DNA of 64,000 bases from the NCBI RefSeq assembly GCF_963853765.1, contig NC_088855.1:36704001-36768000 (forward strand). Direction: 5' to 3'. A program made the translations under genes and the position numbers. The DNA is from Magallana gigas. Lineage: Eukaryota. The notes below the pieces were generated by a model that worked only from the letters and a program-made list of their open reading frames with translations, searched no databases and was not told the origin of the DNA. This document shows, piece by piece, positions 56,501-58,780 of the stretch (its first letter is position 1; the number at the start of each line of letters is the position of its first letter).

Positions 56501-58780
56501 TTCTGGATTGAATGGGGTCCAGGTACCTAATAGAATAAACTTCAAATTAATACACACATGTATTCTTTTTAAACATTAATGGCTGCATAAAAAAACCCAA
56601 ACAAATGTTAATCATGTTATAATAGTATTAGTAAAATGTATCAGTTCATAACTTTAACATGCAGAGAAATGCACGACAAGAAAGACTTATTGAAACCTAT
56701 GCCCCCATTAATTAAGCGTAAATGTAAATTGTAAATGTACATATAAACATTATTGGTTTTTGAAAATAGCAATATTAAAAAGTGGTGAATTTTTTACATT
56801 AGAACCCTCAGAGTCATACATATCATTTCCATAATTACTTCGATCTTCGAAAAACTTTTCAATATCAATTTCATTTAATTCAATCAGTAATGCCCTGAAA
56901 CATTAAGTGGACAGGTCAGATTTGTATTGACGTAAACGAATTACGAATTGCAATTAGTATGCAATGATCTTTATCTGAAAACAACAGAGATTGGCAAAAG
57001 TACTGAAAATTTATTGGATGTATAACACTTGGAGTATCATGGAGTATCATCGTATACTAAACTGAAAGGGCAGACAAATGCAATGATTATCTTACCTTAT
57101 TAATCATACAAATTAAGTAAATTAACAAAGAGAAAGATAAGGTACTATTTCTAACTGCCATACATAGCATTGGTAAGCACCTTTAGTTTAAAACTTTAGT
57201 AAATTTACTCATATTTTAATTCATATTCTACACACTAAATGAAATCTGTAGAAAATTTTAAAAGATGTTAGTTCCATCAATCATATACATGTACTGATGA
57301 TTCCAAAATTCTTTTATTCGAGAAAACTGTTAATTTGTTAATCATGGTGCTTACCATTAGAGAGAGCTTGCTGTAGTTCTGATGCTGAAATTGCACCGCT
57401 TTGATCTTTATCTATCCTAGAAGGATAAACTTTGGCTTAACACCATGCAACATGCACCGATACGGGGAAAACAAACAGTGGATTCTTAGTGCATGCATGC
57501 TTTCAATTTTTATCAAAATTTAAATGCTCAAATTTTCCCAAGAATTCTAACTCTGAACAAGGATACACTAATACAATGTAAAATATATCATTTTTTAAAC
57601 CAAAGCTTTATTCAATACCCCACAGCAGCCATGTAAAATAATCTAGACTAGGTGATATAGAATGCTGACCTTCCATGTCATATTACAGTAAACATTTACG
57701 GTTCATATTTAATCTTTTAAATATACTTGAATATTTTACATGTTACAGTTTACATGTATACCGGTATATACTCTTTAAAGTCAGTGTTTGAAAATTCCTG
57801 GCTAACATAAAAGATAAAGTAGACTTGGATCACATAAATCCACTGTTTGTTAACCCCTTTTTGAATACAATCTTACCATTGGATAATGCAGTTTGAAGTT
57901 CATTAACACTAATCTGACCACTGCGATCTTTATCAACTCTAGAAAATAATGTTTGGCGGTTAAGATTAGTGTCCATATATACATGTACATATATATTTGA
58001 CACAATACTTTTATACAGGTACAGTGTACATGGTGTATATAATATGTTTTGTAACAGGGACTTGAATCCTTGGCAGTCAATTGGCGTAAGATGTAGACAT
58101 AAATTCGAAGTCATTTGTTGATTGTTGAAACTGAAACTGTAACAACTGTAAAATGTAATAAGCAGCATGCATATTATAAGACATCTGCGAGAAAAAAAAA
58201 ACAACATTTAAAAGTTTCTTTTAAGAATAAAATACATGACGGTCTTGTACATTTGGATAAAAATCATAATCTATATACATTTTAACCACAGGCACCTGAA
58301 TTTTCATTAATCAGTTGCTTAATAAGTCATATATCGAAAAATTCTACCCCTACTATATATAGTAGGGGTAGAATTTTTCGATATATGACTTATTAAGCGA
58401 CTGATTGATAAAAATTCAGGTGCCTGTGTTTTAACACATGACCAGCTAATGTCAGTAATGACATCATTTCAAAATTATTCACCCAGCAGTTACTGTCAAA
58501 AGTAGTGGATGTATATAATTAGTAATTTATAAAACGTAGTTTTAAAATATTCACTCCTATATGCCCAAAACAGAAACTTGTCTGATGTAAAAAAAAAAAA
58601 AAGAGAGACAAGGGAGTAGCTTTCTTCAGGAAGTTCGATTACTCAATATATAGATTCATTTTTCTGACAAACATCGATTCATTACCTTTGAAATATGCCC
58701 CACAAGAAATTAGGATCCATCCCAGGAGGTCCTTGGGGTGGGCCCTGCTGATAACCCTGTTGCTGTCCGTAGTACGCCAT
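53517..58780 (-). CDS. PDCD6: Programmed cell death protein 6 (ALG-2, penta-EF-hand), 6 coding exons per isoform, 190 aa
   Basis: Exons 58686-58780, [57877-57938 or 57355-57416], 56482-56526, 56098-56256, 55707-55816, 53517-53618 (573 nt). Gly/Gln/Pro N-terminus, [60 protein letters not shown]. Confidence 0.95.
57355..57416 (-). CDS. PDCD6: PDCD6 alternative exon 2b (EF-hand 1: [22 protein letters not shown])
   Basis: 62 nt, CCTTCTAG|...G|GTAAGC, phase 2 to 1; absent from the ORF track. Confidence 0.88.
57877..57938 (-). CDS. PDCD6: PDCD6 alternative exon 2a (EF-hand 1: [22 protein letters not shown])
   Basis: 62 nt, TTTTCTAG|...G|GTAAGA, phase 2 to 1. Confidence 0.9.
58287..58428. mobile_element. 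142-bp fully palindromic MITE with 7-bp TSD, P-superfamily-like ends
   Basis: TTTTAAC|CACAGG...CCTGTG|TTTTAAC; 71-bp arms, no spacer, 3 transitions. CANRG termini with 7-8-bp TSDs are characteristic of P-superfamily elements. Confidence 0.85.

Follow-up and report, generated by a model that had tools for sequence, protein, structure and literature searches.

Two alternative EF-hand 1 exons, probably mutually exclusive, in the PDCD6/ALG-2 gene of the oyster Magallana gigas

We analysed a stretch of 64,000 nucleotides (nt) of the oyster Magallana gigas (contig NC_088855.1, positions 36,704,001 to 36,768,000; C. gigas in the database records cited below). The whole of this 64-kb stretch is called the window here, and it contains no N. 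It carries a PDCD6/ALG-2 gene in which the exon for the first EF-hand (EF1) is present in two versions, named 2a and 2b. Our main conclusion, to which we give a probability of about 85%, is that they are a true mutually exclusive exon pair in a single-copy gene, with both copies used and retained. Exon 1 would join 2a in some transcripts and 2b in others, each of them in turn joining exon 3, and two penta-EF-hand (PEF) proteins of 190 residues would result, differing at six positions of EF1. Exon 2a would be the major form and 2b the minor one. Exclusivity would be enforced at least by the reading frame, with the out-of-frame mRNAs presumably removed by nonsense-mediated decay (NMD). A tandem duplication of the exon, older than the divergence of the mollusc classes, would have created the pair, and purifying selection would have kept both copies since. 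The first-pass annotation of the window, made from the sequence alone, had proposed that this lineage diversifies ALG-2 by swapping EF1. The proposal is supported by reads from both donors (22 versus 6), by the identity of the two products to the RefSeq isoforms X1 and X2 and by the signs of purifying selection, while its wording was too narrow, because the swap is not confined to oysters but extends to the mollusc classes at least, and the isoform pair was already in public annotation.

Two versions of EF1 and their use

The gene was read and translated from the minus strand of the window. It has six exon positions over about 5.7 kb, with splice variants at position 2, and all of its introns are of the GT-AG type (Table 1). 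On the evidence of its sequence the gene is a member of the PDCD6/ALG-2 family and encodes a PEF protein. The match to the human ALG-2 structure 2ZN8 (E-value 1.7e-87, residues 7-188, 182 residues) is far stronger than those to sorcin (3e-40) or calpain, and the best database matches carry the name programmed cell death protein 6. The Pfam models EF-hand_1/5/6/7/8 scored above the cut-off in both isoforms, and canonical Ca2+ ligands are present in EF1 (both versions, DxDxSG..S..E) and in EF3. A six-frame search of the whole 564-Mb assembly found one PDCD6 locus, the other EF1-like matches being distant PEF paralogs; in the same search, residues 31-54 of isoform b (the product with 2b) had exon 2b itself as their sole strong genomic match. 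When the isoforms were compared with the 5.7-kb gene by tblastn, exactly two copies of EF1 (E-values 7e-10 and 1.9e-8) and one copy of every other exon were obtained.

Table 1. Positions of the PDCD6 exons and of the elements between exons 2a and 2b in the window, in order of transcription
Feature	Position	Strand	Remarks
Exon 1, coding sequence	58686..58780	-	initiator ATG at 58780; N-terminus rich in Gly, Pro and Gln; last two bases, AG, open a split Arg codon
Exon 2a, V-type EF1, major form	57877..57938	-	62 nt; reads to exon 1 (16) and exon 3 (22)
2a-2b intron	57417..57876	-	460 nt; ordinary GT-AG
Stem, 5' arm	57837..57857	-	begins 20 nt past the 2a donor; conserved among four oyster genera
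Three UGCAUG (cluster 57444..57497)	57492-57497, 57451-57456, 57444-57449	-	flank the 3' arm; candidate Rbfox-type elements
Stem, 3' arm	57464..57484	-	ends 47 nt before exon 2b; conserved among the same four oyster genera
Exon 2b, I-type EF1, minor form	57355..57416	-	62 nt; 6 reads 57355/56526
Exon 3	56482..56526	-	45 nt; common acceptor of 2a and 2b
Exon 4, EF2-EF3	56098..56256	-	159 nt
Exon 5, EF4 region	55707..55816	-	110 nt; single copy
Exon 6, coding sequence, EF5	53517..53618	-	single copy; TGA stop 53519-53517

The first-pass annotation described two 62-nt exons of identical phase that keep the Ca2+ ligands D, D, S, S and E, and it stated that the inclusion of both or neither shifts the frame. 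All of this agrees with a direct reading of the sequence. The exons lie at 57938-57877 and 57416-57355 between AG and GT sites, each preceded by a pyrimidine tract ending in ...ctag and followed by gtaag, and they are identical at 36 of the 62 nt and 14 of the 20 residues. The AG at the end of exon 1 forms an Arg codon with the first base of either 2a (A) or 2b (G), and the last base of either exon, a G, forms a Gly codon with the GT at the start of exon 3 (56526). In both translations the ligands occupy loop positions 1, 3, 5, 9 and 12, together with the Gly at position 6. As 62 is not a multiple of 3, only single inclusion stays in frame: one exon 2 gives the 190-residue protein, whereas assembly with both leads to a stop after 53 residues and assembly with neither to a stop after 49. 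In oysters 2b starts with GATAG; with double inclusion its second codon is therefore a TAG stop, and this holds for all four oysters compared (listed in the next section).

Use of the exons was examined with four raw RNA runs (X21-X24; three poly(A) and one single-cell), of which about 1% each was sampled and mapped on window positions 53400-58900, with reads accepted from 90% identity and a junction listing threshold of 3 reads. Table 2 gives the counts. Every junction read is oriented as for a minus-strand transcript, with CT..AC ends, the reverse complement of GT..AG. Among the reads that enter exon 3, 6 of 28 come from 2b, or about one fifth in the runs sampled. Junction reads from 58686 and into 56526 had been suggested as a check of the exon pair; the 1/2a, 2a/3 and 2b/3 junctions were found and the 1/2b junction was not at this threshold. 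No junction between 2a and 2b was listed in the four runs either.

Table 2. Junction reads in the four RNA runs
Junction	X21	X22	X23	X24	Total
Exon 6/5	11	6	2	4	23
Exon 5/4	6	10	3	8	27
Exon 4/3	8	21	1	5	35
Exon 3/2a	5	14	0	3	22
Exon 3/2b	1	5	0	0	6
Exon 2a/1 (58686/57938)	4	11	0	1	16

In assembled data, the Logan transcript protein P0001 has 2a joined straight to exon 3. Isoform a was found on 141 Logan contigs versus 2 for isoform b, both of the latter being genomic. An exact 27-nt pattern across the exon 1/2b junction had no match in the Joint Genome Institute (JGI) metagenome contigs. An intronless JGI transcript contig of 1,295 nt from another mollusc carries an I-type EF1 within a full-length ALG-2 open reading frame. 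Both products of the window agree with public protein records. The isoform with 2a equals XP_011448687.1 (X1; UniProt K1QIZ7; also XP_052718380.1 of C. angulata) and the isoform with 2b equals XP_011448688.1 (X2; UniProt A0A8W8MVC2), both at every residue, where X1 and X2 are automatic models. Sequencing runs in which this stretch occurs carry oyster labels. The exon swap is thus already recorded in RefSeq and UniProt.

Another database model, P0134 (UniProt A0A8W8MVB7, 209 residues, window 57411-57938), holds both EF1 exons in frame. It uses the AG within the first five bases of 2b as the acceptor and so contains two tandem EF1 loops. No read support for this type of splice was seen at threshold in the four RNA runs.

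Conservation and age of the exon pair

The loci were compared at the DNA level in three other oysters, Ostrea edulis, C. virginica and Saccostrea echinata, and further in a scallop (Argopecten) and an abalone (Haliotis). The three oysters have both exons in the same order, at exactly 62 nt each and between AG and GT, and Argopecten and Haliotis also have the V-type exon first and the I-type second, again of 62 nt each. Exon 2b is intact in length, frame, AG/GT sites and ligand residues in the six genera. The 2a-2b intron varies from 353 to 702 nt among the oysters, and around a few conserved blocks it is largely unalignable between genera. Each exon differs at 3-12 nt between oyster genera, and in the pairwise comparisons 2-7 codons changed only synonymously as against 1-2 with an amino acid change, 2b behaving like 2a. 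This bias supports purifying selection on both exons. Within one species 2a and 2b are identical at only 36-44 of 62 nt, and therefore the exons are old and have not been homogenised. Phylogenetic spread, which had been put forward as a check, thus speaks for the pair: both exons are retained across oysters, scallop and abalone, and the RefSeq isoform pairs reach wider.

These RefSeq pairs are of equal length and differ in EF1 only. They occur in five oyster species, three scallops and the unionid Sinanodonta among the bivalves; in four abalones, Gigantopelta, Littorina and Biomphalaria among the gastropods; and in the chiton Liolophura and two octopuses. Beyond molluscs, EF1-only pairs were found in the nemertean Lineus (three EF1 versions), the bryozoan Watersipora and the brachiopod Lingula. 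When the 20-residue peptides were scored with BLOSUM62, V-type paired with V-type and I-type with I-type in 62 of the 66 mollusc species pairs, and in 41 of the 45 pairs of species from different classes; the V/I label residue adds only 2 score units to such a comparison. The scores indicate that the V-type and I-type exons are orthologous across the mollusc classes, and on this orthology the duplication predates the divergence of the chiton, gastropod, bivalve and cephalopod lineages. Its age may even exceed that of the molluscs, as the second exons of Lineus and Watersipora resemble the I-type of octopus, though the peptides are too short for proof.

Some side observations were made on these loci. 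At loop position 6, where Gly is nearly invariant, the V-type exon of five Haliotis species (P0153, P0154, P0156, P0157 and P0161) encodes Gln (DKDRSQQIS), and their I-type retains Gly. In Ostrea edulis a gene of the ABC1/ADCK type adjoins PDCD6 on the opposite strand (L001:18712-18961).

In other lineages, equal-length PDCD6 isoforms differ in other single-exon segments (P0043/P0182, P0008/P0152, P0164/P0020/P0162, P0029/P0165/P0166, P0199/P0021, P0053/P0214, P0196/P0194 and P0055/P0118). Variants of the EF4 exon occur in amphioxus, Mya, Ruditapes and Mercenaria, with three versions each in Ruditapes and Mercenaria, and variants of the EF5 exon occur in Amphiura, Hydra, Lineus and Lingula; the isoforms listed for Mya and the venerids have the V-type EF1 only. 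Judging from these records, tandem exon duplication has apparently hit PDCD6 repeatedly, as at a hotspot. No extra copies of exon 5 or 6 were found in the four oysters. In Ostrea edulis the acceptor end of exon 6 is present in about four tandem repeats just upstream of the real exon 6 (L001:15668-15958). A PEF paralog on another chromosome of the oyster assembly (L010; G000:C7:15128978-15129295, minus strand) has two tandem EF1-EF2 exon copies of about 43 residues, 180 nt apart (VDQDRSGKITSVELQK..., VDQDRSGQISAQELQF...), perhaps another case of mutually exclusive exons in the PEF family.

Intronic elements and competing explanations

The best-conserved blocks of the 2a-2b intron among the four oyster genera are two arms that lie near the two ends of the intron; in the window they are 21 nt long and 90% complementary, with a perfect 15-bp core. 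The stem they would form measures 16-21 bp among the oysters, beginning about 20-29 nt past the 2a donor and ending 38-47 nt before 2b. The minimum-energy fold of the intron includes it, with a z-score of -3.0 against shuffled sequences, and the head-to-tail duplex energy is better than in 40 of 40 shuffles in three oyster species and in 38 of 40 in the fourth. When the region from exon 1 to exon 3 was scanned, the outstanding partner of each arm was the other arm, at -25 to -32 kcal/mol versus about -12 to -20 for the next best. The changes in the stem between species are single and wobble-compatible.

The second element is the UGCAUG triple, contained within 54 nt. Nowhere else in the window, on either strand, do three such motifs fall within 85 nt of one another, and the Poisson probability is about 5e-5 per 85-nt segment. 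All four oysters have a UGCAUG 32-33 nt ahead of the 2b acceptor, and three of them have another at 40 nt (or a GCAUG at 38-39 nt). An Rbfox site just upstream of an exon usually represses that exon, and the position of these motifs thus suggests tissue-specific repression of 2b. It was also observed that TGCATG is overabundant in the window as a whole, with 89 matches on both strands versus 40 +/- 7 in dinucleotide shuffles. A search of the genome with the Pfam model Fox-1_C gave no match, and the controls were equally silent. Judged from conservation and folding, the stem and the UGCAUG motifs probably regulate the choice between 2a and 2b in oysters. The stem would shorten the path from the 2a donor to the branch point and could block 2a-2b splicing; it could also have the opposite effect and help that splice.

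Several results weigh against our main conclusion or against the part given in it to the intronic elements. An exon 1/2b junction stayed below the 3-read listing threshold in all four runs at the sampling of about 1%, and the complete 1-2b-3 mRNA of C. gigas therefore rests on the RefSeq X2 model. The strand-consistent read depth within the 2a-2b intron is appreciable, so some of the 2b-3 reads could stem from partly spliced precursors. No transcript contig in Logan encodes the exact isoform b. As for the intron, compensatory double substitutions were sought with RNAalifold in the stem of the four oysters and not found, and the head-to-tail stem and the UGCAUG cluster are absent in scallop and abalone, where duplex energies are no better than those of shuffles; the elements are therefore oyster-specific. 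With an expectation of about five reads in the best run, the lack of a listed 1/2b junction is statistically unremarkable, and the scarcity of isoform b contigs is in keeping with the minor status of the isoform.

Another account of the same data is that 2b acts mainly as a 'poison' exon: inclusion with 2a, or with a retained intron, would bring an in-frame stop and NMD, and the outcome would be less ALG-2 and no second protein. The TAG that double inclusion gives in all four oysters would suit this role, as would a stem that brings the 2a donor near the 2b acceptor and could favour their joining, and the absence of a 1-2b junction at threshold and the notable intronic depth also speak for it. 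However, a 2a-2b junction was likewise absent at threshold. A poison exon needs no conservation of its protein product, whereas 2b has mostly synonymous changes, all the ligands and I-type orthologues across the classes, and a full-length spliced I-type mRNA exists in another mollusc. We consider this account improbable. Much the same evidence bears on whether 2b is a decaying or silent duplicate, with X2 and the few 2b-3 reads being splicing noise caught by automatic annotation. Its low usage (6 of 28 reads into exon 3, none in two of the four runs) and the lack of an exact isoform b transcript contig in Logan would be expected of such an exon, but its length, frame, AG/GT sites and ligands would not be expected to stay intact in six genera whose introns are otherwise unalignable, nor its substitutions to be biased to synonymous ones, its type to have orthologues across classes and the conserved intronic elements to adjoin it. 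A 2b that is never spliced and decays in related species was the outcome named by the first-pass annotation as fatal to the idea, and what was found instead is 2b-3 reads and purifying selection on both exons. A silent duplicate is accordingly very unlikely in our judgement. We also considered that the 2b-3 reads might come from a second, nearly identical PDCD6 copy or from another oyster species in the libraries, which are labelled metatranscriptomic and from which reads were accepted from 90% identity upwards; C. virginica indeed has two sets of identical PDCD6 records in RefSeq. This origin is highly improbable, given a single PDCD6 locus genome-wide and no strong match other than 2b for residues 31-54 of isoform b, and any other oyster has the same two exons, which would leave the conclusion unchanged. 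We therefore retain the mutually exclusive pair as the best explanation.

Away from the two EF1 exons, intron 1 contains a perfect-hairpin inverted repeat at 58281-58434, with two 77-nt arms that are 94% complementary and have no spacer. RNA reads from both strands accumulate there, and many of them have loose ends at 58354 and 58428; this pattern points to a dispersed repeat resembling a miniature inverted-repeat transposable element. Reads also cover part of intron 5 (53768-55055) on both strands to a depth of up to about 115x, which far exceeds that of the exons. They carry numerous variants and loose ends, and a transcribed repeat family seems a better description of this segment than a piece of PDCD6.

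Possible effects of the swap and comparison with known systems

ALG-2 is the prototype PEF Ca2+ sensor and links Ca2+ signals to the endosomal sorting complexes required for transport (ESCRT), to coat protein complex II (COPII) and to membrane repair, and EF1 is one of its two high-affinity sites. Aligned with 2ZN8 and in human numbering, the two oyster isoforms differ at residues 35 (V/I), 39 (R/Q), 42 (Q/A), 45 (V/A), 46 (N/S) and 50 (T/Q). As all Ca2+ ligands and Gly6 are unchanged, both isoforms should bind Ca2+, and the swap would probably alter the affinity or kinetics of that binding, or else the contacts with membranes and partners. The human V35 belongs to Pocket 3, which binds Sec31A (PMC4346919). 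In the alignment both isoforms retain the Pocket 3 residues L48, A51, L52, S53 and W57, of which the first four are encoded by exon 2 and constant between 2a and 2b. R34, K37 and R39 of the human protein form a basic triad needed for binding to acidic membranes and for recruitment to exit sites of the endoplasmic reticulum (PMC10907313). C. gigas 2b has Q at position 39; the I-type exons of scallops, several gastropods, chiton, octopus and Lineus have T or N at position 37; and 2b of C. virginica and Saccostrea retains K and R. The I-type would thus often, not always, have one basic residue fewer. That one isoform has weaker membrane binding or an altered Sec31 pocket is a reasonable hypothesis and no more.

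The mammalian delta-GF122 isoform of ALG-2 loses ALIX binding (PMC4346919). Like the oyster pair, it arises by alternative splicing of the same gene into two Ca2+ sensors, and the differing partner selectivity is that of delta-GF122. The means differ: in delta-GF122 an alternative donor terminates exon 4 and two Pocket 2 residues are lost, whereas in the oyster a whole EF1 cassette is exchanged. The statement of the first-pass annotation that the delta-GF122 donor is unavailable here was borne out. Exon 4 ends ACT AGC TTT G/gtaagt with no GT in its last codons, a second GT donor 6 nt upstream is absent from the sequence, and a single exon 4/5 junction was recorded (27 reads).

As regards the exclusive choice of exons, FGFR2 IIIb/IIIc is the classical two-exon mutually exclusive cassette held in frame by exon length, and some such cassettes are controlled by Rbfox. 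The oyster exons share with them the tandem arrangement, homology, equal length and phase, loss of frame if both or none are included, and UGCAUG in the intervening intron; the protein and the domain are different, and a role of Rbfox is a candidate only. Competing RNA structures of the docking-site and selector type operate in insect Dscam exon 6, 14-3-3zeta and Mhc. The oyster cluster resembles these in its conserved intronic base-pairing but has a single stem with both arms in the 2a-2b intron, each without a second conserved partner, and Dscam-like competition was rejected on this ground. In alpha-tropomyosin, exons 2 and 3 are kept apart by steric exclusion, the donor being too close to the next branch point. 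If the oyster stem forms, the 2a donor and the likely branch point of 2b would be about 37-48 nt apart, as estimated from the distances along the intron, which would resemble alpha-tropomyosin. Unlike there, the linear intron of oysters is 353-702 nt long; simple steric crowding does not apply at that length, and a steric block would have to depend on RNA structure. Spliceosome incompatibility does not apply either, as both introns are ordinary GT-AG introns.

These comparisons can be combined into a bolder reading. The EF1 choice in oysters would be set by an RNA device undescribed for mutually exclusive exons, in which one conserved stem holds the two ends of the 2a-2b intron together, the shortened donor-to-branch-point path sterically bars 2a-2b splicing, and UGCAUG lets an Rbfox-type factor tune 2b. 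The V/I pair would further be an ancient lophotrochozoan invention giving two ALG-2 sensors with different membrane or Sec31-pocket properties, and PDCD6 would be a recurrent hotspot of EF1, EF4 or EF5 exon duplication in different invertebrate phyla. We regard this combination, taken as a whole, as tentative and rather doubtful.

The kind of event is ordinary, that is, a mutually exclusive pair of the textbook type, and its isoforms are real and were already known. A full-text search of the literature found no paper on mutually exclusive exons of PDCD6 or on the age, regulation or function of the swap. The deep orthology of the exon types, the oyster module of stem and UGCAUG and the recurrent exon duplication in PDCD6 appear to be undescribed. 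The value of the locus therefore lies in comparative and mechanistic detail and not in the discovery of the isoforms. A pair of EF1 cassettes retained for more than half a billion years is a natural experiment on the role of EF1 beyond Ca2+ binding, and the oyster intron offers a compact conserved module of a stem plus UGCAUG for the study of exclusive exon choice outside insects and vertebrates.

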